A stretch of 49,214 bases of DNA. Source: Octopus bimaculoides. Its lineage: Eukaryota. The stretch lies in the NCBI RefSeq assembly GCF_001194135.2, contig NC_069007.1, positions 20,988,270 through 21,037,483 on the forward strand. Direction: 5' to 3'. The stretch's first letter is position 1; each line of letters starts with the position of its first letter. Made by a program: the position numbers and the translations under genes. The notes under the pieces are model-generated. The model saw nothing but the letters and a program-made list of their open reading frames with translations, was not told the DNA's origin and made no database searches. Positions 11,447 through 45,124 of the stretch are shown one piece after another.

Positions 11447-12694
11447 TTACCAACACAATACAAAACTAAGCAATAAATACAACTGTAAGCTAAAAATTAA
11501 CCAAAAATTACAATTTGTGTTTTCATTAAAATTCTGATAAACACCTGAAAGAACGGCAAAAAAGATAATGAGCCGCAAGAATATTTTAACGAGTCCAACC
11601 TTTTTCTTTCTCTTTTCCACTCTTGGGAATATTTCAACTTTTTCAGTTTCATAATAAGGATAACCAAAAAATGGTTGAAATTTAAAACGCCATCTTTGGT
11701 GAAATTTAATTTTCTTAAGCTTAAACGACCGACGATGAAGATTTTCCTGTTCTGCTTCAATTCTGCTGAAAAATTTTGAAAATTCATGCATCGTTGGGAA
11801 ATTAGTTTCTTCGTCTTTCATTTGTTCAAACACTTTGCTTCCGCGTTCTATACTTTTGTAACAGTTCTGCAATTTGGAATAATGTCGGTCAAGCTCGTGA
11901 ATAAGCTGACTTTGCCACATATTGACCTTCTTCACTTGTTCGTTGACGGAAGCCTGCACTGCATAAAGAAACTGGTCACGACTGTCGTAGATTTTACTTA
12001 AAACTTCATCACGAGAAGTTGTTATCTGATTTTTCACCAGGTCAAGCTTCAAAAGTTGTAAATTGATTTGCTCTTTAATAACTTCGAGATATTCAAACTC
12101 TTTTTCGGTAAGTTCTTTGAACGTACTCAGCATCTCTTTGAGTGGCTTAGTTTTGTGTCGATAATGAGATTTGTAATAACACTGTAGGCAAATATCTTTA
12201 CTGCAGGTGACACAGAACACCTGTAGATATTCACCACTATGCAATTGGCACTCTGCTTCTGGTGGTTCCTTAGGATCAGGATAATTAACTTGAAGAGGTA
12301 CGAGTATGTTCTCAATGGAATCCATGTGTAAGGTAAGGTTGTGTTTGGTTGCACACCAGCTACACAAATCCATGTTACATTTGCTGCAGTTGTACTTGGC
12401 CAAACGGCTGTCTTTTGTACAGGAGTCACAAATCTTCTGTTCAAAAGATGTGGTGATTTCTTCTTTGAGAGAATTAATAAGAAAATTGGCAGGAAATTCT
12501 TGAGATGTTGAAATAGTTGCACGACACTGTGGACACTGTATCAAGCGCATGGACGATGCATTTTTTAGCTGTTGTAGGCACTCATAACAAATAGAATGAA
12601 AACAAGGCAGCAGCCTAGGATCTTCGTACTCATCAAGGCAGACGGGGCAATTCAGGAGACGCTCTCGAACCCGGCGCAGTTTCAGATTTTCCAT
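11447..12694 (-). CDS. TRIM-family E3 ubiquitin ligase: RING, B-box1, B-box2, coiled coil, two C-terminal hydrophobic segments (415 aa); coding region intronless
   Basis: C3HC4 RING CPVC...CFHSIC..C...CPQC; B-box1 CDSC...CSKC..LCSWC...H; B-box2 CQLH...FCVTC..ICLQC...HYRH; true ATG at 12694, 1 nt after the acceptor ttttgcttatttgttacag. Confidence 0.92.
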   Translation of the reverse strand: MENLKLRRVRERLLNCPVCLDEYEDPRLLPCFHSICYECLQQLKNASSMRLIQCPQCRATISTSQEFPANFLINSLKEEITTSFEQKICDSCTKDSRLAKYNCSKCNMDLCSWCATKHNLTLHMDSIENILVPLQVNYPDPKEPPEAECQLHSGEYLQVFCVTCSKDICLQCYYKSHYRHKTKPLKEMLSTFKELTEKEFEYLEVIKEQINLQLLKLDLVKNQITTSRDEVLSKIYDSRDQFLYAVQASVNEQVKKVNMWQSQLIHELDRHYSKLQNCYKSIERGSKVFEQMKDEETNFPTMHEFSKFFSRIEAEQENLHRRSFKLKKIKFHQRWRFKFQPFFGYPYYETEKVEIFPRVEKRKKKVGLVKIFLRLIIFFAVLSGVYQNFNENTNCNFWLIFSLQLYLLLSFVLCW

Positions 12695-13159: not shown

Positions 13160-13288
13160 GTCTACCGTGGGCAAGTGTCTGCTATTGTAGCCTCAGATTG
13201 ACAAAAGCCTTGTGAATAGATTTGGTAGATAGAAACTGAAAGAAGCCCATTATATACATACATATACATGCATGAGCGTGTATGTATG

Positions 13289-18056: not shown

Positions 18057-18600
18057 GTTTAAACATATTCTTCGTTAGATCCTCTCATCGTTTCAGTGTG
18101 ATAATGTATTCCCAAAGTGATGTGTTGTTTTCAGCAGTTTACAAACAAAACTAAACTTATAGATATACCGACAGATAAAATACAATTTCAATCAAAATAC
18201 AAAATGCATAAAGAAAGAAAAGAAAAGGGTCAGATTGACTATAAATTACCATTCTCTCTTAATGGTCAGATTATAAGGAAGAAAATTTATATAAAATGGA
18301 AATAGTCAAAGGGTAAGTCCACCTTTGTCCTGGGAGAATTTTGAACCTGGGTTCTCATTCCTAAGGTATTTTTCCGATGTTGTTGTTATCATCATCATCA
18401 TCCCTGTGGGATGAAGTTAAAATAATAGACAGAGAACACCACTGGAAAATATGAAAACTAAAAGAGGCAGCACATATGCTAGGACATAATAACTTCCTAA
18501 GCAGACCGAGTGCAGATATGAACAGCATATGGAAACCGGTATTAAGGAAGGATAGGAGAATATTAGATTTATAAGCCCTAAAATTCACTCCATAATTGCC

Positions 18601-18830
18601 CATGGGCATATAGCATAGTGGTTAAGAGCACAGGCTATTAACTGCAAGATTCCAAGTTCGATTCCAGGCAGTGACCTGAATAATAATAACATTGGAAAAA
18701 TACCTTAGGAATGAGAACCCAGGTTTGAAATTCCCCCAGGACACCTGATGAAGGCTGGAGAGTACATTGGCCGAAACGTGTTAACAACAAACCAGATGAG
18801 GACAAATATCTGTCAAATGTAAATAATGTA
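18601..18830 (+). mobile_element. tRNA-headed SINE with (AAT)n linker and hammerhead-containing tail (family D)
   Basis: A box TAGCATAGTGG at 18611, B box GTTCGATTC at 18656, then AAT repeats, then GACAC-CTGATGA-A-GGCTG...TGGCC-GAAACG at 18740-18782. Confidence 0.75.
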
Positions 18831-19089: not shown

Positions 19090-19253
19090 TCACTTGATAA
19101 ATATTTGTGGACATCCTTCTTCAGTGTCGACAATCTTTTCACATTCCATCATAAAATCATAAGTGATTCTCTCACTGATAACAGAATCATTCTTGTAATC
19201 CTCATGATTTCTAACAAACTGCCTTGTCCATTGAGCCATTGTCATTATATTTC
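19090..19253 (-). CDS. GCLC-like exon 16 (NIMTMAQW...CPQIFIK*)
   Basis: 164 nt ending in TGA. Confidence 0.92.
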
Positions 19254-22200
19254 CTGGAAAATAAATTAAAATAATAAATGGTTTATTATTTATTTTATAT
19301 GGAAATTATTTGCTGTATTATGTAACGATATCCTGGCTCCATGATCTGAGGCACAAATAGATAAAGCGTTGATTGTTTATTTTCTTTAAAACTGAATTAT
19401 GGTAGAATGATTTAATTTCAAGAATGATTCTGGAAATGATCTACTCATGTAATTTATGCACCACTAAAGTTTATTTTTGTGAAAAAAAGTGCATAAATTA
19501 CATGGGTTTTTATAGTAAGTGTGTAATGTTTGGAGTGTAAAAACATTAACAATAAGGATTACTGGGATAAAATACTGCTTAACATTATATTTTGTAACTG
19601 ACAAAGAAACTAGCATTATTGGGGATTTAATGTTGTATATTTGAAATAACATTTATTAATACTGAGGAAAAAAAATGAATCATTTTACCTGCAGCTTTGT
19701 CTGAGATATATTTCAGGTATTGCATTATCTGAGGTCTGCCATTGGCATCATAGTCAATGTAATCAAGATATTTGTGTATGAGAGGAATTAAACCAGGGAA
19801 ATCATCCTGTTGGGAATAGAATCAAAATGATTAAAAACGAAAAGAATCATGTCAATGCCATAATCGAAACCATTCTGGTTAATCCAAGAGTTCATTGAAG
19901 CATTTAAGAACTACAGTTGTCATGCAGATTCTTCATCCCACACATCAGGTGGAACTTACAGAACTTTCTAGAATCTTTCTTGTAGACTAATTCTTACTGA
20001 CACAAACAATTACCATTTACTTCAGAATCTAAATTTTACCCAATTCATTTTTAACTTAATCCCAATTCATTTAAAACTGATATAAAAACTAGACATCTGT
20101 TTCTTTTGGATTTTAGAATTTAGAATCTCAAATAACTGTTTTAGAATATATTAAAAATATTTTTTACCTTTCCATTCATGATGTCATTTATCGTCATCAA
20201 GGTGTAAATATCATCAGTTAGTTCACAACCAGCAAAGTCTAAATGACACAAAACAATTATAGATTTATAATATCAAAATATTTGGTTGGTTGATAGAACA
20301 AAAATATTTATTTATCATCATCAAATAAAAAAAAAAAAACTCAGAAAAGCGCTATTTGTGCAAGTGAATCAGTTTGTGTGTGTCAGCAATGTTGTTTGTT
20401 CAATGCCATAACTAAAGTTGAGAGGTGTAATTTCCTGCAGCTACTTGTATATATAGCCAATGGGTCTGTGTACATGTGGGGAAAATGTACACCACAGAAA
20501 CTGGGGAACTGCCCCTATGAGACTACATGACTCAGGAAGGACCTTTATCTTATTTATCCTTATGTGTCAGAGACCCCCATCATCCCACCGTCCATATATT
20601 TTAAGTACATGACACTCCTTGTACTGCAATAGAGAAACTATAAACCCCAGTAGAAACACTATCATACCTCTAACTAATGTTTGTGACACCCTAGGATGTC
20701 CCAACACTCTCAGGTGGTGTGGCCTTTAGTTAAACAACAAAATATATTTCCTAAACAATCATGATATTTAATCAAAGTTAAAATTAATTTCTTGTTATTC
20801 TTAAAATTTCTTACTTACCTTTTTGAATATCTTTCTTGAAGTAAAACTTTTCTTTATTGATGGCATCACGCTTCTGTGCTATTGAAATGTTTTCTTCAAC
20901 CTTGGAGAGAGTGAAACGATAAGGAATAAATAAATATTTCTATTATACATATATGGAGCAAAGAATTCAGGAGAAAATATTTGCAAAGATATTATTGACA
21001 TACTTATTATGTCCTTTGATTAATTTTAATCCTTCAGCTATTTTATGCTTTTGGGGGGCCTGCAATCACCCATGTTACTGATTCTGTTATTATCATTTTT
21101 AATTGTTACACTAGATAATATTAGAGTCAATAATATCTTCACGAATATTTTCTCCTGAATTATTTGCTCCATGTTGAAATTATTTTCACATTGGTGGCTG
21201 CCATGATTCAGAGCAAAACAAATCAGCTGCAGTACAGACTTCAACGTGACGGGTGGTGGCTTTCCATCATAGTAACGTGTGGTGAGGAAGATGAGGCTAT
21301 AATGCCTGTCCAGAAACCGGTCCATGTGAGTCCAAATACTTGAATGTATGCTGAGAGATTATCTTAGCCCATTTGCCCTCAGATGGTTGATTTCTGTAGT
21401 TATCATCAGTTTTTTTGGCGATTTAAATAAGAGTTTTGACTGTTATTTCCAGCAGGTAGACATACTTAGTATGTCCTTTGATTAATTTTATATTACACAC
21501 ACACACACACACGTGATCTTAATAGCTTTAAGTATGATCTTAATAACTTTAAAAATGGTAATCTTATGAAAGCAGTGTGTTGAGATATAATCAGGCACTT
21601 ACCATAGGCCACATATCAATGGCTATGTCAAAGAGTTCAATATTTATTTTAGAGAAATCAATATTTACCTTTGTTATCGGGATCAAAAGGTTCAGTTTGA
21701 AAGTAACAATAGCTCGAGTGAGAAGAAGAATAAACACAACAAGAGCAGCATTTTCAAAGTCGGTCAATTGAAGCTGGAAATATAGAAAATGGTTATTAAT
21801 GGCATTTCAAGACTTTTGAAAGTTGCAAGGCAAAGCAATATATAGTAATATATAAACATTGATATTTATTTATGGATATTTATTTATATTGATATCAGAG
21901 GTGACTCCAGGTCATCAGTGTCACTCAGGCTCATCATAGATTTTGCATAAGACATTCAAAGAATTATTAGAAATACTTTTCCAAGGTGTCTCGTAGTGAG
22001 ACTGAACTCAGAACCATGTCGATGTGAAGCCAACACCAAAAAGCTATGGCCGCACCTATATACAATGAAATATACAGAGATATTTATTACGGAGACAGTT
22101 TCTAGTAAAATGTTACCTCCATTGTTCTAAATTCTATTTTCCATCCAGATTTTTCATCAGGAAGTTTCAGTCTTATGCTGTGCCAATTACTTCCAATGAT

Positions 22201-22988
22201 GGTCTAAAACAGAAGGTTAAACAAGGTTTTTCACTGATATAGAACATCTAAAACAATTTAATAATGAATATATTTATACACATATAATATGTACTAGTGA
22301 ATTATGCATATCATTAATTATAGATTATGAAACCCAGAAGAAAATATGACCATTGTGCATTTAGAATCAAGATGTGTAGAAAAAGTATTTAGTCAGATTT
22401 ACTATAATTGCAGTGTAAAATACATTGAAAAGGGAACACATTGTGAAGAAAACAAAATGCAAATTTTTAAGTAACCTTTGACCTTTACCAGATTATACTC
22501 CACCTCCTGCACTCTATGTACCGATGGTGTATGACTGTTTTGAACACCCAGGGAGGGTATACATGGTATTGATCATGTCACACCCTACAATCTCATTGAG
22601 CTGGATCCACCCACTACCAGAACATATCACATTGACCCATAGACTGTGGTCAAAATGCATCCAGGAAATTGACTTTATCAGATCTATGAAAATTTATCTC
22701 TGACATAATGAAATTAAAACAGCTTATTTCTTAATTAATTTCTAGCTTCATAATTCACAACGATCTATTTGTAAATTGATAAAAAAAGTATTAAACAAAT
22801 ATATTTTACCTGAATGTGATCAGTATCCTTGGCATTGTCTTGGTGAAGCTTTTCTTTGAATAAAGTGATAGGATCTCTAATCAGGAACTGGGCAATATAT
22901 TTCGCCATCATTTCATCAACACCTGATTATTGGAGCAACAGTGTGTGAAGTTTTGTTAACTTTAATAAAATACTACACACAAACAGAG

Positions 22989-23019
<31 letters not shown>

Positions 23020-23037
23020 CATATATACACACACATA

Positions 23038-23093
<56 letters not shown>

Positions 23094-26000
23094 NNNNNNN
23101 NNNNNNNNNNNNNNNNNNNNNNNNNNNNNNNNNNNNNGTTTCACTTTTTTAGAAAAAGATTATCAAAAGTCTTTGAGAATAATAAAAAATGTTAAAAAAC
23201 AGTTTGAGTATTAAAATGCATATATACATTCTTTGATGATAAAATATATTTAAAGTATAAAGCTTATATTATTTATATAGATATGGTGATAAATTGAATA
23301 TTAATTCAATTTAAAACCAAGTGGCCTAGCATATAAAAATATCTGAAAATTCAGAAAAAATTGTATTACATGTGTATAAGGGATGACCACTAGGTGGACA
23401 TCCAATATGCTAGAAAGAGGTCATCAAAGAAAATAATGTTCTCCAGAAAAATTTCTTCTGGAGAACATAATAGGCTTCTTTCAGTTTCTGTCTACCAAAA
23501 CTACCCACAAGCCTTTGGTCAGCCTTAGTTTATAGTAGAAGACACTTGCCCTAGATACCATGCAGTGGGACTGAACCCATAACTATGTGGTTGGTAAGCA
23601 AGGTTATTACCACACAGCCACGCCTTTATGTGACATGCTTCAAGATATACTATTCCAAAAATCTAATTAATTTTTGTATGTTTTTAGAGAATTTCTAAAT
23701 ACCTTCAGCCTTCAATAATTCATACTGTTCATGATCATAACTGAAATCATAGTCATTATAAAATTGGTCGCTCACAGAAAGGTAACTGCTCAATGTATCA
23801 AAACGAGATTTCTTCACCAAGATGTTGCCATTTGTTAAAGGCTAAAAAGAAAAGAAAAAGATAAAATTAGATGACATTTATTCATTACTGCAATTCATTT
23901 GATAGCAACCCATACGTGACCACCACTTTGTAATAATTACAATTCCAGTCAAGTACCAGAGTTGGTGGAATTAATTAACTTCTATCCTTTCAAAATTGCT
24001 GATCATGTGTCAGGAACCATTCTTACATAGAGATTTCTCCAAGAGAGATGAAGGAATCATGATTCATTATTGAATAACCAACAAACAGATTATTTCTATT
24101 GTCATCATAAGATGATTAAAAAAAGACCTTCAGACGACCACAATTTCAGTGCCAGACCAAATATATCTGAAGACGAGAGTCTCTATAACAAGATTAGCAA
24201 TGTATTTCTAATTTCATAATTCATGTTATTCCATATTCTTCCGGTCACCTCCTCTCAAAACTGCTGGCCTTGTATCTAAATTCAAAGCAGTTAACTGATA
24301 TACTTCCTTGAAATATTTTAAAACGAAAAAGCATCATAGTTTGTTTGAAGCAGTGCCAAATGCAAATAACGTGAACATTTTGAAGAAGACCATTGAAGAC
24401 CATTGAAGACCATTGAAGACCATTGAAGACCATTGAAGAAGACCATTAAGCACTGCAGGTGATAAGCTATGCAAAATATTTAAGACGATGCCAATAAAGG
24501 CAAAGACAAGATATTGTTTCACCTAATATCATTTGTTTAACATTTCTATTATATTTTGGGAAAGATTCCCCTTATCAAATATAAGATAGAAAATATTCCA
24601 TAAGAATGTTATTGACAGGCCATTCTGGTAAGTTCTATCTTACATTTGATAAAAGAACTCTTTCCTCAAATATAATATAATAGAAACACTGAACACCCTA
24701 TATAAGGTGACACAGTATCTTGTTTTCGTTTTTATTTATTGGCATCACCTTACATATTTTACCGAACTTCACACCTGTGTTGCTTAAAGGTCTTTTCAAC
24801 AATATTTATACTTTAAAATGATTTTTACTGAGAAGTCAGGAAGGAATGGTTTGTCAGTAAATCTTTTACAGTTTCTTTTTGTTATTTACAGAACGAGGTA
24901 AATAACTTGAAACTCACTTCCAAACCCTGTTCTTGTTTGGTACGATCTTCACAAGTGGGAATCAGAGCACACCAACGGCAGTCAGTATCAGACAAAAATC
25001 CTCGATGAATAGGAGCGGCAGCTGTCAGTGCCAACTGAAGAACATTAAGAAAAATGGATAGAATGAAAAATAACATTACATGAAATAACATAAAATGCCT
25101 TCCTCAAAATTCTGATTAAAGGTAACGATATATTTAATATATGGTACGAGATTACAAAGTTCTCTCCCCTCATTTCTATTTTGGAACAATAATGTAATAA
25201 AGTTTTATGTTTTAACTCATTATAAAGCACTGGTGATGGTGCCACATAGAATGCACCAAATCCACCTACAAGGCTTTTGTTGGCCTGGGGCTATAATAAT
25301 AGACACTTGTCTAAGGTGTCATGCAGTGGGACTGAACCAGGAACCATGTAGTTGGGAAGCAAGCTTCTTATCACACAGTCACACCTCTTAACAAAAGAAT
25401 AGAGCAAAGCCTACCATAATTGGAGTAAGAGGTACCAGATTGTCAAAGAGATATACAGCTTCTTTCATATCAGCAGCTTGAAAAGTAACTTGTATAGAAC
25501 AACAACCAAGTCCGAATATTGGTGAGTCCATATAAATATATTCTGGTTTCAGACTTTTCTTCATTTCTTCATTGTCTCCATATTCGGACAAATCTTCTCC
25601 ATATGGCATTACGGTATTTTTATCTTTATAAACTGGAACAAAAAATTTGAGACGAAATCAGTTTTTAAGTCTGGCTCAACTTACTTCAATAACCAATAAA
25701 AGCTGGCTCAAATCACTTCAGTAACTAGTAAAATTAAGCTTAAATCACTTCCTTAACTAGGCTCAGATTAGTCCAGTCTTTAATTAGTTTATTAATCAAT
25801 AAAAATCAGGCATAAATTACTTCATTAACCAATGAAACCTAGTTCAAATCACTTTATAACCAGTAAAATTAAGCTTAAGCTTAACCAGGATCTATTTATC
25901 TATCAATTTGTGTGTGTCTGTTTGTCCCCTATCACTGCTTAATTACCAGTGCTGGTTTGTTTACATCCCTGTAATTTAGTGGTTCAGCAAAAAAGGAAAC

Positions 26001-28626
26001 AATAGAATAAATACCAAGCTTAAGAATTATAAGTACAAAAACCCTTTAAGGCGGTGCCCCTGCATGGCCACAGTAAAAAAAAAATAAACAAAAATAAACA
26101 ATATGAAAAACTGATGTAAAGTTTATTCTTTTACTTGTTTCAGCCATTTGACTGTGCCATGCTGGAGCACCAACTTCAAGGATATTTTTAGCCAAAGAAA
26201 TCGACCCCAGGACTTATTCTTTTGCCAAACCACTAAGTTACAGGGACATAAACACACAAAAATTGGTTGTCAAGCAACGGTGGGTGGACAGACACAAAGA
26301 CGCACACACATAAATACACTCACACACACACACACACACATATACGGTGGGCTTCTTTCAGTTTCTATCAACCAAATCCACTCACAAGGCTTTGGTTGGT
26401 CCAAGGCCATAGTAAAGAACACTTGCCCAAGGTGCCACATAGTGGGAATGAACCCAGAACCATGTGGTTGGGAAGCAAACTTCTTAACACACAGCCACAC
26501 TTGTGTAATTGTCTATATTTTGCAATCTCATTAATTAAAAAGATAATTAATTCTATGTTTAGTATACTTACTTGGGACATTGATAACAGTTTTACAGTTT
26601 CTTCTGTTTGCCATATTTTCAAAAATGTTTCTGGACACAAAAAAATATAAAATATTTATTTACATTATCTACATTTGACAGATATTTGTCCTCATCTTGT
26701 TTGTTGTTAACACAACGTTTCGGCTGATATACCCTCCAGCCTTCATCAGGTGTCTTGGGGAAATTTCGAACCTGAGTTCTCAGTCCTTAGGTATTTTTAT
26801 TACATGTCACCCCCTGTACTTAAGTGGTTTTATTTGACCAATTCCCAAATGTTGAAATGTAAACATTTAGAATACTTTATAGGCCATTAAATTGACTCCA
26901 GTACTTGACTGGTTATATTATACACACCATATTAAGTCCATATGAAAGCTAATCCTCTGCTATTACTGTTGATTTTATTGACCCTGAAGAGATGAAGGAC
27001 AAAGCTGACCTCATTGATGTACAGTTTAGCACCGGAATATATTAATATATTATTACTCGATTAATCTACTCCATCGGTCACAAATGACCAAGGGTGCACC
27101 TAAGAAGTTCCCCTCCAGGGTACAAGTTTGGGCGGAAAGTCACCTCACTGGCGAATGCACAACCTAAGGTTGTTGTTTTTATGGAAGACCAGCGGTTGTC
27201 CATGCATACCAGCCTCCCCACTCCACGTCACTGATGTTATCCAAGGGAAAGTCAAAGGGGCCGATACAGCTTGGCACCAGCGACATCGCAACTCATTTCT
27301 ACAGCTGAGTGAACTGGAACAACGTGAAATAAAGTGTTATAACGTGTTAGAAAATATATATAAAAAGGTAAATGGCTCACTTAAAGAACTCAAAGTGTGA
27401 ACCCAAGGCAGCGTCTGCTATAAAAACTGATTGGTGAATTCCAGTTGCTTGCTTGTTTGCTTCATAAGCAGGAAAAGAGAAATTAGGGCAACCCAATCTG
27501 AAATAGAAAAAAGTAAAAACTTTAATCCTTTAACATTCAGATTACTTTGCCAAATCCAATGTTTATTCATTTGCATTATTTTGAATTAATCTTGTATTAT
27601 CTCATAGCTTTCAGAATTCGATGATGTAATTATCTATTTTTAGAATGACATTGTAACATAGGTGTAAGAGGCCAGATCTGGTCATTTTCAACATAAAGCA
27701 AGTACAATATTTGGGCTAAATATGGCTGGTTTAAACGTGAAGGGTTAAACCAGTTATTTCTATTGTTGTTGTTGTTATTGGGTCCTCATGGTCAATAAAG
27801 GAAGTATTATTATTGCTATTATTATTATTTCTTTATTGCCCACAAGGGGCTAAACAAAGAGGGGACAAACAAAGACAGACAAAGGGATTAAGTCAATTAT
27901 ATCGACCCCAGTGTGTAACTGGTACTTATTTAATCGACCTCGAAAGGATGAAAGGCAAAGTCGACCTCGGCGGAATTTGAACTCAGAACGTAACGGCAGA
28001 CAAAATACCGTTAAGCATTTCGCCCGGTGTGCTAACGATTCTGCCAGCTCACCGCCTTATTTTATTGCTATTATTATTATCATTATTATTAATCAGTTGT
28101 AATGTACAAGAGAAAAGCCATCTGGTGGTGTTGGCCACCAGCAAAGAAATGTAATTCAGCTATCTTCGCTATGCTACAGATGTATAAATATTTACATAAT
28201 AAAAGGAAAATATTCAAATTTAAAACCTGAATTAATAATTAATAAAAAACAAACTCATAAACAAATATTTATGTAAAAAAAAAAACAGGCATACTCGTAA
28301 ATATTTCACTTACCTTGGAAAAGTTGTTAAAGTAACCAGACTTTGGTTTGGACCCAACAATTGTTTCAGTGATTTACGCCTAAAATATTAACAAGATGGA
28401 TTCTTGATGTGAGTGTCATGAAACTGAACAAAATTATTATTATTATTGTTATTATTCAGGTGACTGCCTGGAATCGAACTCGGAATCTTGGGGTTAGTAG
28501 CCCGTGCACTTAACCACTATGACATATGCCCATGGGTATTTGGCGTAGTGGTTAAGAGCACAGGCTATTAACCGTAAGATTCCGATCTCGATTCCAGGCA
28601 GTGACCTGAATAATAACAATAATAAC

Positions 28627-28657
<31 letters not shown>

Positions 28658-28894
28658 TTACCTTATGTGAGTCATCAAGATGTCGAAATAATAATAATAA
28701 TAATAACAATAATAATAATAGATAGAGAGAAGAGTTCTTTACTTTTGTATACGATTGACCTGTTGAAGGCACACGAGATGCCGAAATATATTAAAAGATA
28801 TTAAAAAAAAAAAAGTCAATTGTATACAAAAGTAAAGAACTCGTCTCTCTATCTATTACATTTCTGCTGAGTTACTTCAGTCCTTTATATAAAC

Positions 28895-28926
<32 letters not shown>

Positions 28927-29363
28927 TTGAAAAATACCTTATGACTGAGAACCCAGGTTCAAAATTTCCCCAGGACACGTGATGAAGGCTGGAGGGTATA
29001 TCAGCCGAAATGTTGTGTTAACAACAAACAAGATGAGGACAAATATCCATCAAATGTAAATAATGTAAATAATGAACAATGTTATTGTTTACGAAATACA
29101 CAACATGGACTATAAGTAAACAAAACGTTGAATATTTGTGTATAAATGTAAATAAAGTAAATTCAAAATATTATTGTTACCTTTCTTTAAAATAATCTTC
29201 TATACGATTCAGATCAGTCAAGGAGCTACCAAAAGGATTCCTGGGTTTGCCTTCCATCGTAAATTCAGCACATTCTGGGGTCCACAAGCTTTAATATTTT
29301 TTGTTTTAAAAAGAGAAACTATATTTAGGAAACCAAAAATTAAGAAAGTGTTAAAAGTGGTGG

Positions 29364-29407
<44 letters not shown>

Positions 29408-29518
29408 AGGAGGAGGAGGAAGAGGAGGGTGATGGTGATAAGGACAACAATGGAGGACTGTATCCTCCCATGACACACAATAGTGGGCAAAGAAGATGGA
29501 TGGATTTATCTATATCTA

Positions 29519-29565
<47 letters not shown>

Positions 29566-29567
29566 GC

Positions 29568-29621
<54 letters not shown>

Positions 29622-30555
29622 GTCAATCTATCTGAAGAAGTTGAGAAATTGACCAGAGAGGAAAGTGTTTGTCTGTAGACCTTTCAGACGCGTCCACCAT
29701 ACACATTCTTTCGCCATAGCCACAAGTACGATGAAATTGGCTCTTCCTTCTCGTTTCAAGGAAGGAGGTGCGACAATATTCATGATAGACTCGGTTGATA
29801 AACCGACTCGTCCCACACGCGATAGCAGTCATTCGACATAGACCCACAGGTCGGAAATGGTTGGACACTGTACGAGTGCATGCAGAACAGTTTCATCGCT
29901 CTGACCACATCTCGAGCAGGCCGGCCCCATGTTTCTTGAGCCATGCCTGTAGAGCCTATCCCGAATGGGTAGAGACAGACAGACAGATAGATAGATTGAC
30001 AGACAGACAGATAGATTGACAGATAGATATGTTTCTTTATTGGTGACACAGGGCTGAACACAGAAATAGTGGATGTGGGGTAGAGATGATGGATGGACCA
30101 ATAATTATACTCACCATGATTCTAATCCTTTTACTTCAGGAGATGCAAGTAAAGATGTAGCAGTCAACAGTAACTGGACAACACGTTTCTCATGGTCAAA
30201 TCGTATTAACGTATATTCAGTCTAAAAGAGAAATCAGACCATTTATTGCAAAATACCATACATGAGAATGGAGGGTGTTGCTGAAGAGGTCACATTAAAA
30301 GATAAAAGATATATAAAGATTAGTTTCCAATTTTTCTAAACTCAAGAATTTGTATAAAATCAACAAGTTTTCTTTATCTCTCTTTCTCTATCAAGCTACA
30401 CCTACCTCGTCACCCCAATAAAATGGATAATTCTTTTTGTCCTTATATCTCCTATACAGATGAACAAACTGCAGTCTTGCTTGTTTCTTGACACATGGAA
30501 TATAGGGTTTAATCTCTTCCCATGTCATTAGGGTACCCTCCGAAATAATGACCAT
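19090..30555 (-). CDS. Glutamate-cysteine ligase catalytic subunit-like protein (divergent GCLC paralog candidate), 16 coding exons, 606 aa
   Basis: All 16 exons have GT-AG ends and consistent phase (total 1821 nt, no internal stop); motifs WGDE.EY, PE...MEG, FPRLGCP, YMD..FG.G...Q, DCRW, KSR, RDP, NW, EFR align with GCLC/Gsh1. Confidence 0.93.
19689..19806 (-). CDS. GCLC-like exon 15 (DDFPGLIP...KAA)
   Basis: 118 nt, AG/GT ends. Confidence 0.92.
20168..20238 (-). CDS. GCLC-like exon 14 (...YTLMTINDIMNGK)
   Basis: 71 nt, AG/GT ends. Confidence 0.92.
20819..20900 (-). CDS. GCLC-like exon 13 (VEENI..AQKRDA...FYFKKD)
   Basis: 82 nt, AG/GT ends. Confidence 0.92.
21669..21773 (-). CDS. GCLC-like exon 12 (LQLTDFEN...IPITK)
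   Basis: 105 nt, AG/GT ends. Confidence 0.92.
22117..22203 (-). CDS. GCLC-like exon 11 (TIIGSNWH...WKIEFRTME)
   Basis: 87 nt, AG/GT ends. Confidence 0.92.
22810..22922 (-). CDS. GCLC-like exon 10 (VDEMMAK...IRDP...DHIQ)
   Basis: 113 nt, AG/GT ends. Confidence 0.92.
23480..23625 (-). mobile_element. SINE family B head region (similar partial copies at about 21950-22055 and 25255-25385)
   Basis: TAGTAGAAGACACTTGCCC...GCAGTGGGACTGAACCC...CCACACAGCCAC. Confidence 0.7.
23703..23841 (-). CDS. GCLC-like exon 9 (PLTNG...KSRFD...)
   Basis: 139 nt, AG/GT ends. Confidence 0.92.
24385..24450. repeat. 10-bp tandem repeat (GACCATTGAA)n, about 6 units
   Basis: Direct inspection. Confidence 0.9.
24918..25034 (-). 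CDS. GCLC-like exon 8 (LALTAAAP...DCRW...GLE)
   Basis: 117 nt, AG/GT ends. Confidence 0.93.
25415..25632 (-). CDS. GCLC-like exon 7 (YKDKNT...YMDSPIFGLGCCSIQ...PIM)
   Basis: 218 nt, AG/GT ends. Confidence 0.93.
25669..25875. repeat. Degenerate ~33-bp tandem repeat (CTGGCTCAAATCACTTCAATAACCAATAAAA-like)
   Basis: About 5-6 imperfect units visible. Confidence 0.65.
26125..26500 (-). mobile_element. Full-length SINE family B/C with internal (CA)n
   Basis: tRNA-like head GTGGCTGTGTGTTAAG...GGTTCATTCCC and tail as at 31067-31430. Confidence 0.8.
26572..26630 (-). CDS. GCLC-like exon 6 (NIFENMANRR...VINVP)
   Basis: 59 nt, AG/GT ends. Confidence 0.9.
26655..26800 (-). mobile_element. Family D tail (5'-truncated) containing an intact hammerhead
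   Basis: Near-identical to 28925-29075 and 18690-18830. Confidence 0.8.
26709..26754 (-). ncRNA. Minimal type-I hammerhead ribozyme, complete core
   Basis: GACAC-CTGATGA-A-GGCTG(GAGGGTATAT)CAGCC-GAA-ACGT-T/GTGTT. Confidence 0.75.
27381..27497 (-). CDS. GCLC-like exon 5 (LGCPNF...SHFEFF)
   Basis: 117 nt, AG/GT ends. Confidence 0.9.
27835..28060 (-). mobile_element. SINE family A, full length
   Basis: Head GGCGGTGAGCTGGCAGAATCGTTAGC, B-box GAGTTCAAATTCC. Confidence 0.85.
28314..28379 (-). CDS. GCLC-like exon 4 (RKSLKQLL...TTFP)
   Basis: 66 nt, AG/GT ends. Confidence 0.9.
28456..29075. mobile_element. Family D element with inverted duplicated tRNA-like heads (28456-28523 -, 28540-28609 +), a nested foldback insert, and a tail with a decayed hammerhead (28974-29019)
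   Basis: TGGCGTAGTGGTTAAGAGC...CTCGATTCCAGGCAGTGACC and its reverse complement lie back to back; tail GACACGTGATGAAGGCTG...CAGCCGAAATGTTGTGTT. Confidence 0.75.
29181..29288 (-). CDS. GCLC-like exon 3 (LWTPECAEFTMEG...)
   Basis: 108 nt; acceptor is weak but is the only in-frame one. Confidence 0.82.
29630..29975 (-). mobile_element. L1/Tx1-clade LINE ORF2 C-terminal relic (zf-RVT)
   Basis: LPIRDRLYRHG...CSRCGQSDETVLHALVQC...LW...MAKECVWWTR: CCHC knuckle of Tx1/L1 ORF2. Confidence 0.8.
30115..30221 (-). CDS. GCLC-like exon 2 (TEYTLIRFDHE...)
   Basis: 107 nt, AG/GT ends. Confidence 0.9.
30406..30555 (-). CDS. GCLC-like exon 1 (MVIISEG...YWGDE)
   Basis: 150 nt, donor gtaggt. Confidence 0.9.
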
Positions 30556-31066: not shown

Positions 31067-31430
31067 TACTCTTTTACTTGTTTCAGGCTTTTGACTGTGG
31101 CCATGCTGGAGCACCGCCTTTTAGTCGAGCAAATCGACCCCAGGACTTATTCTTTAGAAGCCTAGTACTTATTCTATCGATCTATTTTGTCAAGCGATGG
31201 TGGGGGGACAAACACACACATACAAACATACACACACACATACATATATATATATACATATATACGACGGGCTTCTTTCAGTTTCCGTCTACCAAATCCA
31301 CTCACAAGGCTTTGGTCAGCCCGAGGCTATAGTAGAAGACACTTGCCCAAGATGCCGCGCAGTGGGACTGAACCCGGGACCATGTGGTTGGTAAGCTAGC
31401 TACTTACCACACAGCCACTCCTACGCCTAT
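31067..31430 (-). mobile_element. Full-length SINE family B/C
   Basis: Head GGCGTAGGAGTGGCTGTGTGGTAAG...GGGTTCAGTCCC, internal (TA/CA)n, tail GGCCACAGTCAAAAGCCTGAAACAAGTAAAAGAG. Confidence 0.85.
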
Positions 31431-34154: not shown

Positions 34155-34322
34155 ATACGGAGGCTTCTTTCAGTTTCCGTCTGCCAAACATACTCACAAG
34201 CCTTTGGTTAGTCCAAGGTTATAGTAGAAGACACTCGCCCAAGTTGCCATGCAGTGGGACTGAACCCAGAACCATGTGGTTGGGAAGCAAGCTTCTTACC
34301 ACACAACCACACCTGTGCCTCG
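34155..34322 (-). mobile_element. SINE family B head region
   Basis: Same as 31262-31430. Confidence 0.75.
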
Positions 34323-36142: not shown

Positions 36143-37560
36143 GTTTATATATATATCCTCCATTCCGCTTTGTTACGAGAGTGACCTCCCTTGATCTCTC
36201 TCCCTCTCTCTCATTTATTTATTTTTTTTCTTTTCGTCTTATCTGGACTAAAATTGTTTTTCCTTTATCATATAGCATTTATGTTTTCCGAATGGTCATT
36301 ATCCTTTCTTTCTTTTTTTTTTTACCATATAAACATACGCACTATATATTCGTTCTTCATTCGTTTATCACTGTTCTTATTCTAACTCATGTCCGTTGTC
36401 TGGAAATCTTTCGTCACACATCTGCGATCTCTTCAGCGACACTTTTCGTTTTCGTGTGTTCTCTCGCTCCACTTACTCCTTTCTGCTCTTCTATACTTAT
36501 ATGATGGCTGTCTACTCGTGACCAAGGAAAACCATTGCTCATGCGAAATGCTAGCAATGCCGATGCATGATGTTGTTGCACCAGCAGTCGGCCTCACCCG
36601 GGTTTGCATCCGCGGCTTTTGTGTTCGTAGCGGTGCCCTCGTACTTGATGAGGCATCAGATAGTTGCTGCACCAGCGATAATACAACTCGAAATTTTAGG
36701 TCCAATAGGGCTTACACAGCACTTACAGACCTTCTCCACCCTATTGACTAGATCCAGAAATAAGCCAGAGCAAGATATCAAGTGCCAATAGGGGTCACAA
36801 GCCGTGGAGTGTGGAAACCCCATGATTTCAAGCGCAAGCAAAAAATCCTCAAAATTTTCAATGTCATTTCCTATAAACCGTTCTTTTTTTTTATTTATTA
36901 GTGACCTTCTCCTTGGGAAATACTTTAGCAAACGCTAAAGAGGGGCTAACTCCCAGTGGTCTTTCAGCTCGCCGAAAACCAATCCGGAATTTCTGAGATC
37001 CGGCGCTATTGCTAGATAGTCGTTCATCCGTCCTTTTGGTAGGTCTTGTTTTTAGTCTTGCCGGGTTTCCGGCAACTCTCCTTAATACGCAAGCCTAGTG
37101 GGGCGGTCATGGTCCAGTCGCCGACCACCCGACCATTCAACAGGTTGTACTAGTTTCCATGTTACCTGGAGCACTCATGAGAAACCTCACCTCACAAGTG
37201 ACCCTCACACACACACATGCACACATATTTTCAATCCCACCTCATTATCCTACATTTTTCTATAACTTCTCCCAGATCTATTGTAAATCCTGTTATTGTT
37301 AACGATCGTTGTACTTCATGGTACTTTGGAGTATTTCTTTGAAACTTTGCGGCCTCAAGTAGAAAAGGCCATCAATGTTGCTGTTACTGCTACAGAACGT
37401 GATTTAGTTGCTGCTGCTGCTGCTGTTTGTAGTGCTGCTGCTGTCTTTTCCAGTTATACTTAAAAACCGTCAGTCAACTCAACATTGCATTTGGTTGTAG
37501 ATACACTCGCATATAACACCATATTTATATATACGACCAGATATTTCCATATACAACACC

Positions 37561-37650
37561 ATGGTTCTTAACGTTGACTACAACTACCTGGGTTCCAGTG
37601 GTATGAAAGTTTCCAATATATGCCTTGGCGCCCTGACTTTCGGCACTACT
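37561..37650 (+). CDS. AKR exon 1
   Basis: caccATGG to ACT|gtaagt; 90 nt. Confidence 0.9.
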
Positions 37651-38028
37651 GTAAGTAAATCCCATTTTTACCCCTGTATTCATTGAAGAAGTCTCGTCCT
37701 AACATATTCTAAGAATCCCTAATAATGATTATAGTAACTTATCGAACTTGGTAAGAAAGCCAATAATTTTAAAATTTATGATTTTATGATTAAAAAAAAA
37801 AAGAACAAAGTTTTAGAGAAGCAAGGTTCGGTGGGCGGCTTTGTCTTCTCCCATCTACATCATCATCTACACTATTCATCTCATCTCATTAATGGATATA
37901 TAATACTGTACTCTTTAGTAAATTACACACACACACACGTGTATCACATGCGCACACAATCACAAAGACACATACACAGAATGTTCAGGATAAATTTGAC
38001 GATCTGTTATATCTCGCTTTTAATCAGA

Positions 38029-38062
<34 letters not shown>

Positions 38063-41000
38063 AAATGAATAAGAGAATGGAGATATTGAAATTAATAAGA
38101 GTTTATTATCAGCAAAAAATTGGGTAAGATATAGTATGCAAATATAATTAGGGTAATGAAGAGTAGATAAATAGAGATTGATTAAATTACAATATGAATG
38201 AGGTGAGGAATTAAATTACATTTGTAGGTTATATATAAAATTGAGAAAAACTTATCTANNNNNNNNNNNNNNNNNNNNNNNNNNNNNNNNNNNNNNNNNN
38301 NNNNNNNNNNNNNNNNNNNNNNNNNNNNNNNNNNNNNNNNNNNNNNNNNNNNNNNNNNNNNNNNNNNNNNNNNNNNNNNNNNNNNNNNNNNNNNNNNNNN
38401 NNNNNNNNNNNNNNNNNNNNNNNNNNNNNNNNNNNNNNNNNNNNNNNNNNNNNNNNNNNNNNNNNNNNNNNNNNNNNNNNNNNNNNNNNNNNNNNNNNNN
38501 NNNNNNNNNNNNNNNNNNNNNNNNNNNNNNNNNNNNNNNNNNNNNNNNNNNNNNNNNNNNNNNNNNNNNNNNNNNNNNNNNNNNNNNNNNNNNNNNNNNN
38601 NNNNNNNNNNNNNNNNNNNNNNNNNNNNNNNNNNNNNNNNNNNNNNNNNNNNNNNNNNNNNNNNNNNNNNNNNNNNNNNNNNNNNNNNNNNNNNNNNNNN
38701 NNNNNNNNNNNNNNNNNNNNNNNNNNNNNNNNNNNNNNNNNNNNNNNNNNNNNNNNNNNNNNNNNNNNNNNNNNNNNNNNNNNNNNNNNNNNNNNNNNNN
38801 NNNNNNNNNNNNNNNNNNNNNNNNNNNNNNNNNNNNNNNNNNNNNNNNNNNNNNNNNNNNNNNNNNNNNNNNNNNNNNNNNNNNNNNNNNTAAGAGCACC
38901 ATCCGAGCGTGATCGTTGCCAGGGCCGCTGACTGCCCCCCCCCCGTGCTGGTGGCACATAAAAAGCACCATTTGAGTGTGATCGTTACCAGCGTCGCTTT
39001 ACTGGCACTTGTGCCGGTGGTACGTGGAAGACAACATTCAAGCGAGGGCATTGCCAGTGCCGCTGGACTGGCTCCTGTGCAGATGACACGTAAAAACACC
39101 ATTTGAGCATGGCCATTGCCAGTACCACCTAACTGGCCCTCGTGCCGGTAACACATAAAAGTATCCACTACACTCTTGGAGTGGTTGGCGTTAGGAAGGG
39201 CATCCAGCTGTAGAAACTCTGCCAGATCTTAGAAATATGATGAAGTACCATAAACTACGATGAACATCAATGATAACAGGATTTAGAAAAGGGGTGGGAG
39301 AAGATTATAGAAAAATGCTGGATAGTGAGAGGAGTAAGCACATACATACATACCACCCCTGAGACACTTCAGAAAAAAGAAAAACCGTTGGAAAACAGTT
39401 TATAGCAGAGACTCCAGCAAATAAGATCTGAAGAAGGAATTCTAATTCCGAAATATCATCGGACTACAGTTTACCAAGTTACAACAGTTATACAGTCCAT
39501 TTTTTGTTCTATAGTGCATTGTTATACCTTCCTAAACTTTTTATTCTTTACAAACAAGAAGACCCGGCAAGCCAAGTGAGATCGTTGCCAGTGCCCCTGG
39601 ACTNNNNNNNNNNNNNNNNNNNNNNNNNNNNNNNNNNNNNNNNNNNNNNNNNNNNNNNNNNNNNNNNNNNNNNNNNNNNNNNNNNNNNNNNNNNNNNNNN
39701 NNNNNNNNNNNNNNNNNNNNNNNNNNNNNNNNNNNNNNNNNNNNNNNNNNNNNNNNNNNNNNNNNNNNNNNNNNNNNNNNNNNNNNNNNNNNNNNNNNNN
39801 NNNNNNNNNNNNNNNNNNNNNNNNNNNNNNNNNNNNNNNNNNNNNNNNNNNNNNNNNNNNNNNNNNNNNNNNNNNNNNNNNNNNNNNNNNNNNNNNNNNN
39901 NNNNNNNNNNNNNNNNNNNNNNNNNNNNNNNNNNNNNNNNNNNNNNNNNNNNNNNNNNNNNNNNNNNNNNNNNNNNNNNNNNNNNNNNNNNNNNNNNNNN
40001 NNNNNNNNNNNNNNNNNNNNNNNNNNNNNNNNNNNNNNNNNNNNGCAATGTGTGTTTTTGTATCAATTACAAGGAGGATATATTACGAGAGATACAAGGC
40101 TTGTTTGCTATCAGCCTGAACATGTTTTTAGATATGAAACATAAGGAGCATATTTAAAAGATATTCAAGATCTGTATTAAGAGCCTGAACTTATTTCCAT
40201 ATATGTACATGTGTGTGTGTGTGTATGTGTGTGTGTGTGTATGTGTGTGTGTGTGTGTGTGTATAATACATACACACTCACATGCCTGGTGAACTGGTAG
40301 GATTGTTGGTATGCCAGGTGAAATAGTTAGTAGTATTTCACCTGTCCTTACATTCTGCATTAAAATTTCACCAAGGCCAACTTTGCCTTTGTAGGGGTTG
40401 ATAAAAAATGTAGAAGTTTTGGGGTTGATAAAATAAGTACCAGTTGTGGGTGTTCTTCTCTAGCACAGAGAAGACCCAAATGGGTCTTCTTCTCCAGCAC
40501 AGCATATTACCAAATATTTTAGTCATTTGTCATTGCCTCTGAGACCCAATGCTCAAAAGGTGCTTTATACGGTCCACTGGCACGGGTGGTAGTTGCATGA
40601 CACCAGCACTGACCACACTGCCTCCATGAGGTGCCCTTTGTGTGCCTCTGACATGGGTGCCAGTTATGTGACACCATGGAGTCTGATTAAAAAATAAGGG
40701 GACTGATGTTATATAGAAAGAAAACTGCAACACATTAGTTAATTTTAAGATCTAATTTTGCTAAAATGTATTATTTTTGTTGATAGGATGGAATTAAATT
40801 GCATCGACCAGGTCAGTTGGACCCCACAGGTGCATATCAACTGCTTGACCGTTTTGCTGAATGTGGTGGCAACTTCATTGACACAGCAGATGTTTACACA
40901 GCCCGTCAGTCAGAGACAATTGTTGGTAATTGGCTCAGCAGGTAAGAATCATCATCATCAACATCATCATCATCATCATCAACGTCTGTTGTCCATGCTG

Positions 41001-41658
41001 GCATGAGTTGGACAGTCTGATCAGAGCTGGCAAGCCGAGGGGCTGCACCAGACTCCCGTCCGATTTGGATGCCCTTCCTAACGCCAATATGATATTTAAA
41101 CCCTTTAGCATTCAGATTACTTTGACAAATGCAAAACTTATTTATTCACCTTTGTTTTGGATTAATCAAATAATCAAACCAATAAAACATTTGATCTTGA
41201 AGCTACAAGATATTAATGATGTGAATGTTTTATTTTTAGAATGACATTATAGGGTAGGCGTGAGAAGCCAGATCTGTCTGGTCTGAATGTAAAACATGTA
41301 GAACATCTAGGCCTGATATGGCTGGTTTAAATGTTAAAGGGTTAAAGTGAATTCTACATAATATATTTTAGGTTCTTGTGGAAGCTGCGTTGCTTCTGAA
41401 TGACGTTGTTGCATGCATGCAACATTGTTGCCTGTGACAAGCTGGGCTTTGGATGTGATGTTGCATATGTAATGTAGGGGTCGCATTTGTTGGCTTGACA
41501 CCCTGTTTTTTTAATTTAGACAAATTAGGTTATATTACATTATTTACATTTGATGGATATTTGTCCTCACCATATTTTGGCTAATATACCCTCCAGCCTT
41601 CATCAGGTGTCTTGGGGAAATTTCGAACCTGGTTTCTCATTCCTAAGGTATTTTTCAA

Positions 41659-41699
<41 letters not shown>

Positions 41700-42883: not shown

Positions 42884-42932
<49 letters not shown>

Positions 42933-43150
42933 ATATGTATTTATATGTATTTATGTCTTTAATTTTTCTTAGCAAAGAGAGGAGCAGGTATGTTATTGCC
43001 ACTAAAGTCCGGTTCAACAATAACCTCAAAGATCCGACCGACGTCAATGCTGTTGGGCTCAGTCGTAAACACATTGTAGCTGGCTTAGAGAAGAGTCTTG
43101 AGTGTTTGCAGACAAATTATGTGGACCTTTATCAGGTAAGTTCACATGCT

Positions 43151-43201
<51 letters not shown>

Positions 43202-44365: not shown

Positions 44366-44406
<41 letters not shown>

Positions 44407-45092
44407 TCATCATCTTCGTTTAACATCTATCTTCCGTGCATGCATGCAGCCAAGTAGAAAAACTATCCTAGGCTACTGTGTCTGTATGTATAATGCTTAT
44501 TTTTGTTTCCATAGCAACAATACAGTCTCATGGAGAGAAATGCTGAGTTTGAAGACTTCCAAGTGTGCCAAAATGAAGGAGTATCCATTTTACCATGGAG
44601 TCCACTGAAAGGGTAAGCAACATCCTCCTACTTCTCTAAAATAATTCCTAATTCTTTGAATATTTGTCATTGTTCTCGTTACTATGACAACATTAGGGGA
44701 AGACATTATGTGGTTGTTTGACATACTAGAAATAGCAGTCATCTTCGTCAAACATATGTTTAAAGAACAAAAAAAAAAGGTATGGTCATATCTAGAGTGC
44801 TTTTGATTATCTTTTTCAGTCAGACCTGACCTAAAGACTGACCTGAGACTGACCAACAATACCAAGACTGCCATAGCTCTGTTTGACCATAACTGACCTA
44901 GGCCTGCACATCTTTATTTTCATCACCATCAATTATAACTGTCCAAGGGACATTCTCCACCTCTGATATCACAATTCATTGCAACTCTGTTTGACCATAA
45001 CTGACCGAGGCCCGCACACCTTCGTTATCGCCACCCTCAGTCTGTCTTACACAAGCATGGGAAAGTGGAAGTTAATGATGTTGATGATGATA

Positions 45093-45124
<32 letters not shown>

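Follow-up and report, generated by a model that had tools for sequence, protein, structure and literature searches.

An intact GCLC-derived paralog with replaced substrate-site residues in Octopus bimaculoides: a neofunctionalisation candidate from an octopod-restricted family

Background

In glutathione synthesis the rate-limiting reaction is that of GCLC, an enzyme whose active-site motifs have been conserved between yeast and humans. The DNA analysed here, i.e. a stretch of 49,214 nucleotides of Octopus bimaculoides (RefSeq assembly GCF_001194135.2, contig NC_069007.1, positions 20,988,270 to 21,037,483, read along the forward strand; hereafter the window), contains on its minus strand a GCLC-like gene in which the catalytic residues of glutamate-cysteine ligase (GCL) have been retained and in which residues that are otherwise invariant have been replaced at the substrate site and at a regulatory cysteine. 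This gene represents one lineage (lineage A) of an octopod-restricted family derived from GCLC. We consider, with moderate confidence, that it would encode a competent Mg-ATP ligase with a re-specified surface for substrate recognition and regulation, and without the coupling to GCLM via Cys553. The gene model itself is already public in RefSeq, where it is named GCLC or GCLC-like, and a literature search retrieved no paper that describes an octopod GCLC expansion or a remodelled site.

Results

A complete and constrained gene

Six-frame translation and enumeration of splice junctions yield a GCLC-type gene that runs from position 30555 to 19090 of the window (minus strand), with a footprint of 11.5 kb and 16 exons separated by GT-AG introns throughout (Table 1). 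The coding sequence of 1821 nt specifies a protein of 606 amino acids (aa) that aligns end to end with GCLC, and the ATG at which it starts is the first one past an in-frame stop. The translation is letter-identical to the O. bimaculoides RefSeq proteins XP_014772723.1/XP_014772724.1 (UniProt A0A0L8HFG7), and positions 9090 to 40555 of the window match GCA_001194135.2 CM046627.1:20,997,359-21,028,824 at every base. The complete 606-aa, 16-exon gene that had been claimed in an earlier note on this DNA is thereby borne out, both by the splice model and by the identity to RefSeq. The assembly gap within the gene (44 N, intron 9) has no coding consequence, that is, no coding sequence was lost and no frameshift introduced: it lies 565 nt beyond the exon-9 donor and 171 nt ahead of the exon-10 acceptor, the junction of the two exons (...LLKAEG/VDEMMAKY...) is gapless against canonical GCLC, and the O. 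vulgaris ortholog has identical 139-nt and 113-nt exons around a 487-nt intron without an additional exon.

The gene is intact and under purifying selection. All exons of the O. vulgaris ortholog are identical in size to those of the window gene, and the ratio of non-synonymous to synonymous substitution rates (dN/dS, or omega) between the two is 0.176 (dS 0.254, dN 0.045; Nei-Gojobori), with the lowest values (0.07-0.14) over residues 300-606, i.e. the catalytic C-terminal half. The O. sinensis ortholog has been split in the annotation into XP_029652334.1 and XP_029652562.2 (on CM016886.1, near 2.10 Mb and 2.30 Mb), and its exons 1-10 and 11-16 lie some 195 kb apart, in the wrong order and beside 100-N gaps. 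We considered that lineage A might be broken in this species and rejected it: the arrangement appears to reflect a scaffold mis-join, and 16 out of 16 exons are present and open. When protein identities between orthologs are compared, canonical GCLC (96.3% between O. bimaculoides and O. sinensis) evolves more than twice as slowly as paralog A (90.6% between O. bimaculoides and O. vulgaris), the paralog being two to three times faster and nevertheless clearly constrained.

A family of paralogs restricted to octopods

Homologs were sought among 5.8 billion proteins and in a further library clustered at 50% identity. The top matches are octopod proteins named GCLC-like, namely from O. vulgaris (90% identity), O. 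sinensis (77% and 75%), more O. vulgaris and O. bimaculoides models, and Argonauta hians (60%). They are followed by canonical GCLCs of 649 aa, from O. sinensis with 52% identity and from Argonauta with 50%, and then, at about 45%, by those of all other animals. The whole paralog family makes up a single cluster at 50% identity, after which the following match is a 45%-identical canonical GCLC. Neither search recovered a close relative of the paralogs outside the octopods; the cuttlefish Acanthosepion pharaonis provided only a canonical-like fragment.

The window gene is not the sole GCLC of its genome, because a canonical one (XP_052823647.1) is present on another chromosome (CM046604.1, 148 Mb). 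The paralogs of O. sinensis and O. vulgaris fall into six lineages (A-F, the window gene being A), all located on one chromosome; Argonauta has one lineage. In O. bimaculoides a single 22.6-Mb chromosome carries lineages C and E, tail to tail at 10.63-10.71 Mb, as well as lineage A (21.0 Mb); a tblastn search with the window protein identified no second GCLC-like copy within the window. The public RefSeq/UniProt models of the O. bimaculoides lineages E and C (P0007, P0140, P0009) contain non-homologous inserts and duplicated or skipped exons, and need re-annotation.

A neighbour-joining tree (Kimura distance, 604 columns, 200 bootstraps) unites eight paralog sequences with 100% support. Their clade is set off by a long stem (0.39 substitutions per site) and nests within a cephalopod clade that has 99% support. 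Besides the window gene this clade holds the sister lineages B-F (O. sinensis XP_036370512.1, XP_029652730.2, XP_029652703.1, XP_036370436.1 and XP_029652761.2) and Argonauta hians GAB1605628.1. The window gene thus stands in an octopod-only clade, as a separate ortholog group apart from the molluscan GCLC orthologs, and its earlier designation as a paralog is upheld by this position as well as by the canonical gene elsewhere in the genome. The duplication occurred in the cephalopod lineage, because the paralogs nest in the cephalopod clade and share with it seven derived states that are common to all cephalopod sequences. Concerning the split between octopods and decapodiforms, three states found only in the canonical sequences favour a duplication before it and no octopod-only states favour one after it. 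The canonical O. bimaculoides gene consists of 16 coding blocks at homologous positions, spread over 74 kb, and all 15 intron positions are shared with the paralogs, which therefore go back to a duplication at the DNA level and not to retroposition. The sister lineages have exons of equal size to those of the window gene. The synonymous divergence between lineages A and C (dS 0.54-0.66, omega 0.21-0.26) points to a fairly recent expansion within Octopus, and to purifying selection on these copies too.

Fold and retained catalytic residues

By sequence, fold and catalytic residues the window protein belongs to the GCS family (PF03074). The Pfam profile matches with 454.3 bits (cut-off 25) and a phmmer comparison with yeast Gsh1 (3ig5) gives E = 1.3e-91. 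An AlphaFold2 model (predicted local distance difference test, pLDDT, 81.6; predicted template-modelling score 0.88) has yeast Gsh1 3ig5 as its best Foldseek match in the PDB, with a template-modelling (TM) score of 0.85, followed by YbdK and by plant and bacterial GCLs; glutamine synthetases are remote structural matches only (TM about 0.25).

Residues were numbered after yeast via the phmmer alignment, and contacts were taken from a study that combines those in the yeast structure with a Leishmania donovani model (PMC5613772). In yeast Gsh1 the Mg ligands are E50, E52, E96, E103 and E470, D49 and K451 contact ADP, R472, Q268 and R313 form the glutamate/phosphate site, and E96 and W445 contact the cysteine moiety in the complexes with glutathione and buthionine sulfoximine (PMC5613772). 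All of these are kept in the window protein: the five Mg-ligand glutamates as E50, E52, E91, E98 and E422, the ADP contacts as D49 and K411, the glutamate/phosphate-site residues as R424, Q250 and R295, respectively, and the cysteine-moiety contacts as E91 and W405. Moreover, these 11 residues are invariant in an alignment of 26 sequences that includes both lineage A orthologs. The motifs listed as retained in the earlier note (WGDETEY, PE..MEG, the Q of CCSIQ, DCRW, NW and EFR) are likewise all present. Compared with canonical GCLC and yeast Gsh1 (PF03074; PDB 3ig5, 3ig8, 3lvv, 3lvw) the window protein thus has in common the fold, the domain, the Mg-ligand glutamates and the equivalents of Q268, R313, W445, K451 and R472; cephalopod GCLC is 51-53% identical to it, and mammalian GCLC 45%.

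Retention is not uniform over the family, and partial decay is confined to lineages D and F. Lineage D (P0135/P0144) is without the equivalents of yeast R313 (DSAW), R361 (KTGF) and W445 (SNGH), and lineage F (P0139/P0006) is without that of W445 (SMNTP). Some family members may therefore be inactive, catalytically impaired or very different, but lineage A would not be among these.

Replacement of otherwise invariant residues

In 24 canonical bilaterian GCLCs 185 alignment columns are invariant. All eight paralogs keep 96 of these, whereas the remaining 89 are altered in at least one paralog, 32 of them in all eight (including R185, C249, H370, F411, P413, R423K and C553). The altered columns concentrate in the conserved motifs. 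In terms of human numbering, the window protein has H183 to F, P184 to E and R185 to F in the HPRF loop, NIFEN for the TLTRN that comes after it, MDSPIFGLG for MDAMGFGMG in the Met-Gly loop (M241 to P, M245 to L), CSIQ for CCLQ (C249 to S), KSRF for KSRY (Y329 to F), H370 to Y, F375 to L, HIQTIIGSNWHSIRLKLP for HFENIQSTNWQ.[LM]RFKPP (FENIQST to IQTIIGS), F411 to L, P413 to L, P415 to D, R423 to K and C553 to P; in addition PEY has become PEC. The motif changes reported previously (PEC, HFEFF, MDSPIFGLG, CSIQ, KSRF and HIQTIIGSNWHSIRLKLP) are all present. As to the HPRF loop, the reported loss of the arginine and gain of an acidic residue hold, with the refinement that the arginine has become Phe and that it is the neighbouring proline that has become Glu; no gap is needed here to align the loop with the canonical octopus sequence, which has the same length, or with the sister paralogs (SHFPLF). 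The window protein is also shorter than canonical GCLC (606 aa against 649, and 11.5 kb of gene against 74-102 kb) and is without its C-terminal tail.

How unusual these states are can be judged against 149 sequences that represent the clusters of the nearest homologs among the eukaryotes (n = 142-148 per site). The position of the HPRF arginine holds R or K in 138 of 142 representatives, whereas the FEFF of the window protein has no basic residue and the arginine is absent in all eight paralogs. The conserved residue is found in 142/148 representatives at H370, in 144/147 at R423 and in 132/147 at S403. At the site of Y329 a Tyr is present in all 24 canonical bilaterian GCLCs and in 111/148 representatives, and Phe328 in the window protein. 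Out of 150 sequences it is the window protein that has the most non-canonical states, at 9 of 21 key sites. Cys553, which presumably forms a disulfide to GCLM, is present in 24/24 canonical bilaterian GCLCs and in none of the eight paralogs (Pro538 in the window protein). It is known as a regulatory Cys of the GCLC-GCLM holoenzyme that is modified by 4-hydroxynonenal (PMC6875399).

Two parts of the earlier description have to be revised. The KSRY tyrosine (yeast Y362) and the second methionine (yeast M262, human M245) had been placed in the cysteine site; in fact, the former forms a hydrogen bond with the alpha-carboxylate of glutamate and the latter is part of the glutamate pocket (PMC5613772). 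Y329F and M245L therefore touch the glutamate and not the cysteine site, and the supposed conservation of glutamate activation is true only in part: the Mg ligands and the Gln, Lys and Arg residues are kept, but the alpha-carboxylate Tyr is lost and M245 has become Leu. The replacement of the so-called active-site Cys by Ser, which had been listed among the changes, is not diagnostic, and this Cys is not essential, because Ser is found at this position in 9/142 representatives and the L. donovani enzyme has Ala (PMC5613772).

The replacements are specific for each lineage. The HPRF and Met-Gly loops read, respectively, FEFF and SPIFGLG in lineage A, FPLF and TKLFGLG in B, LPLF and APVFGAG in C, TPYY and TKSFGVS in D, HPVY and SFTFGAG in E, and DPFF and SMTFAAG in F. 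Two acidic gains in the HPRF loop (E180 and E187) are present in lineage A only and are both kept in O. vulgaris, and the KSRY Tyr is retained in lineages E and F. Over the 89 changed sites orthologs (O. bimaculoides against O. vulgaris or O. sinensis) are 89% identical and sequences from different lineages 61%, compared with a cross-lineage identity of 71% at the other columns. This pattern fits rapid change at first, after which each lineage came under a constraint of its own, as expected of functional diversification rather than of plain relaxation.

Divergent GCLC-like proteins in other taxa

Divergent GCLC-like proteins also occur elsewhere, for instance RWS27097.1 (P0266) of the chigger mite Leptotrombidium, and P0242, P0291, P0289 and P0160, which keep the catalytic Glu, Gln, Lys and Arg and have 6-8 non-canonical pocket states. 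With 35-46% identity they are no nearer to the octopus protein than canonical GCLC is, and nearly all of them keep the HPRF arginine. This suggests that the remodelling of the pocket in GCLC duplicates recurs across taxa, and that loss of the HPRF arginine is, as far as the sequences indicate, almost unique to the octopod clade. The cuttlefish fragment from A. pharaonis (P0283) has MDAVGFGFSCCCLQTTVQ where MDAMGFGMGCCCLQLTFQ is expected; the divergent GCLC-like set as a whole spans 4-8 non-canonical pocket residues.

Gene structure and genomic neighbourhood

The exons of the GCLC-like gene and the other features of the window are listed in Table 1. Downstream of the gene, at a distance of about 6.4 kb and in the same orientation, a single exon encodes a TRIM-like protein of 415 aa with a RING (zf-C3HC4, RING_UBOX) and a B-box domain; it is a publicly annotated gene. 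Head to head with the GCLC-like gene lies a gene for an aldo-keto reductase (PF00248), with two large N gaps in its intergenic/intronic stretch. The latter gene was considered as a GCLM-like partner and rejected, its exons being ordinary aldo-keto reductase sequence (PF00248). A further open reading frame (ORF) of 360 aa combines tandem repeats rich in E and K with a tail rich in His, Tyr and Pro; it matches no Pfam family and is possibly a low-complexity artefact or an orphan gene. A tRNA scan of the window found none.

With respect to repeats, the window holds seven copies (76-86% identity) of an element of about 150 bp that resembles a short interspersed element (SINE). Three copies lie in introns 6, 7 and 9 of the GCLC-like gene, and the one in intron 9 is missing from the O. 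vulgaris intron. Intron 3 contains a palindromic element of about 200 bp between (ATT)n/(AAT)n runs, with partial copies elsewhere in the window, and intron 8 a minisatellite (GAAGACCATT)n of about six copies. In intron 2 a segment of about 350 bp that encodes ...CSRCGQSDETVLHALVQCP... is bracketed by inverted (CTGT/CTAT)n arrays; we take it to resemble the C-terminal zinc-knuckle part of the ORF of a retrotransposon without long terminal repeats.

Table 1. Features of the window (positions are those of the whole stretch; residues are those of the window protein unless stated otherwise).
Feature	Position	Strand	Remarks
Exon 1	30406..30555	-	aa 1-50; ATG at 30555; W47-G-D49-E50; D49/E50 = yeast D49/E50, ADP and Mg ligands
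Exon 2	30115..30221	-	starts T51-E52-Y53; E52 = yeast E52, binding Mg and the Glu amino group
Exon 3	29181..29288	-	P90-E91-C92...M97-E98-G99; E91/E98 = yeast Mg ligands E96/E103; C92 in place of the usual Tyr/Phe (yeast Y97)
Exon 4	28314..28379	-	66 nt
Exon 5	27381..27497	-	ends S177-H-F179-E180-F181-F182-K = remodelled HPRF loop; Arg (human R185, yeast R196) to Phe, Pro to Glu
Exon 6	26572..26630	-	NIFENMANRRNCKTVINVP; canonical TLTRN to NIFEN
Exon 7	25415..25632	-	Y236-MDSPIFGLGCCSIQ250; human M241 to P240, M245 to L244, C249 to S248; Q250 (yeast Q268) kept
Exon 8	24918..25034	-	D-C-R295-W296; R295 = yeast R313, kept
Exon 9	23703..23841	-	K-S-R-F328; Phe for Glu alpha-carboxylate Tyr (yeast Y362, human Y329)
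Assembly gap, 44 N	23094-23137	.	inside intron 9 (23702-22923), beside (TA)n/(TG)n microsatellites
Exon 10	22810..22922	-	AKY369IAQFLIRDP (human H370 to Y, H373 to Q, F375 to L) and start of HIQ
Exon 11	22117..22203	-	TIIGSNW405HSIR409LK411LPDE...GWK420IE422FR424TME; W, K, E, R kept (yeast W445, K451, E470, R472); R423 to K; neighbours remodelled
Exon 12	21669..21773	-	LQLTDFENAALVVF...
Exon 13	20819..20900	-	
Exon 14	20168..20238	-	71 nt vs ~103 nt in canonical GCLC
Exon 15	19689..19806	-	N-G-R-P538-Q; Pro for metazoan regulatory Cys553
Exon 16	19090..19253	-	stop 19092-19090; without the ~30-40 aa C-terminal tail of canonical invertebrate GCLC
TRIM-like ORF	11447-12694	-	
Aldo-keto reductase gene	about 37560-45400	+	one exon at about 43000-43160
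N gaps	38259-38890, 39604-40044		
360-aa ORF	6512-7594	+	
SINE-like copies	13169-13250, 23470-23650, 25255-25386, 26350-26498, 31270-31422, 34161-34314, 44215-44361		
Palindromic element	28420-28632		partial copies 18597-18689, 41672-41764
Intron 2 segment	29500-30030		
Minisatellite	24385-24447		

Discussion

The history that we consider best in line with these results starts with a duplication of GCLC at the DNA level in the cephalopod lineage, in which the 15 intron positions were kept, and after which about six lineages would have arisen in Octopus. The window protein most likely remains an active ligase of the carboxylate-amine type that has the GCL fold and depends on Mg-ATP, and it would probably form an acyl-phosphate on glutamate or a close analogue by means of the retained metal, ATP and gamma-carboxylate residues. 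The surface that appears to have been re-specified comprises the HPRF loop with its lost arginine, the remodelled Met-Gly and FENIQST loops, the position of the Tyr for the alpha-carboxylate of glutamate and that of Cys553. From the replacements in the pocket and at the regulatory position we infer that lineage A is not a housekeeping glutathione enzyme and that its acceptor or substrate preference has changed; the loss of Cys553 in turn makes a regulation by GCLM through this residue unlikely. Both its catalytic activity and its differing specificity or regulation are thus conclusions drawn from the sequence.

Several observations weigh against a change of function. Canonical GCL is already promiscuous for its acceptors, and changes in the pocket need not yield a new class of products. 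Some of the individual states are shared with presumably functional GCLs, that is, next to the Ser at C249 a Phe is found at Y329 in 11/148 and a Leu at F411 in 26/147 representatives. The remodelled loops are the parts of the AlphaFold2 model with the lowest confidence (pLDDT 63-70), and the HPRF arginine and the first Met of the Met-Gly loop, which the earlier note assigned to the cysteine site, are putative members of that pocket. Finally, the remodelled motifs show only a mild rise in pairwise omega (0.20-0.37) and no value above 1, so that positive selection is not demonstrated, and a phase of relaxed constraint early on, followed by renewed constraint, fits the data equally well.

It is possible, if rather doubtful, that lineage A is a specialised isozyme which still forms gamma-Glu-Cys in particular tissues or under stress, independent of GCLM and with an altered feedback by glutathione, and in which the changes in the pocket merely tune regulation or kinetics. 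The documented yeast cysteine contacts E96 and W445 are kept together with all catalytic residues, none of the paralogs has kept the Cys553 that is regulatory in the holoenzyme, a Ser or Ala in place of the active-site Cys is compatible with GCL activity, and the nearest relatives are the cephalopod GCLCs; all of this would be expected of such an isozyme. On the other hand, the HPRF arginine, H370 and R423 have been lost although they are conserved in 94-98% of diverse GCL representatives, and so has the Tyr that binds the alpha-carboxylate of glutamate. Furthermore, one unchanged reaction hardly explains why the pocket motifs differ among six lineages and yet are conserved inside each lineage, while the much slower canonical GCLC has been retained.

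A bolder version of the re-specification that we favour, and in our opinion an unlikely one, would have the octopod GCLC-like genes encode GCLM-independent gamma-glutamyl ligases with lineage-specific, non-cysteine acceptors, which in lineage A could be a cationic (e.g. biogenic) amine. The latter acceptor, which the earlier note put forward, is a speculation; what speaks for it is indirect, namely the lost loop arginine and the gained E180 and E187 of lineage A, and the existence of such an activity in a mollusc. That the Glu-activating ligases of this superfold can switch to organic amine acceptors is illustrated by the gamma-glutamyl-amine ligases of the glutamine-synthetase type (1-naphthylamine glutamine synthetase, PDB 8wwu). 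Within the molluscs, a ligase activity on ATP, Glu and histamine has been reported in Aplysia (gamma-glutamylhistamine synthetase, EC 6.3.2.18), and this is an orphan activity. The window gene cannot be the ortholog of the Aplysia enzyme, because the octopod clade is without gastropod members.

That lineage A has given up catalysis, either as a pseudoenzyme or through recruitment to some structural, binding or regulatory task, is in our view very unlikely. Cephalopods have expanded and recruited enzymes of the glutathione pathway, as exemplified by the S-crystallins that stem from glutathione S-transferase. The long stem branch and the fast rate of the family, and the loss in lineage D of the equivalents of R313, R361 and W445 and in lineage F of that of W445, would agree with such a fate. 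Lineage A, however, keeps every Mg ligand as well as K411, R424, Q250, R295 and W405, which is unexpected if catalysis is dispensable, and it is precisely over the catalytic C-terminal half that its dN/dS is lowest.

Decay of the duplicate (a young pseudogene or an annotation artefact) is extremely improbable: although the gene evolves faster than the canonical one and the RefSeq models of its sisters are fragmentary or contain junk exons, the latter is explained by assembly gaps and mis-joins, and against decay stand an ORF and 16 canonical splice junctions that are intact in O. bimaculoides, O. vulgaris and O. sinensis, the dN/dS of 0.176 and a family that is older than the split between Octopus and Argonauta.

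Conclusions

Since before the split between Octopus and Argonauta, octopods have kept a housekeeping GCLC together with up to six selected extra copies. The preservation of the catalytic machinery, combined with a rewriting per lineage of invariant residues at the substrate site and the regulatory position, is the signature that one would expect of new enzyme specificities, and lineage A can be viewed as a well-supported candidate for neofunctionalisation. The public names GCLC and GCLC-like could mislead studies of expression or antioxidant defence in octopus in which the paralogs are used as markers of glutathione synthesis. If the copies are plain isozymes, they would reveal which of the supposedly invariant residues GCL can spare. 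If acceptor or substrate preference has indeed changed, they would constitute a natural experiment on how the GCL pocket encodes the choice of acceptor and a possible source of new gamma-glutamyl metabolites in cephalopods. Should the acceptor prove to be an amine, the window gene would be the first in animals to encode a gamma-glutamyl-amine synthetase with the GCL fold, and would represent a new route for the conjugation of amines or amino acids in cephalopods.

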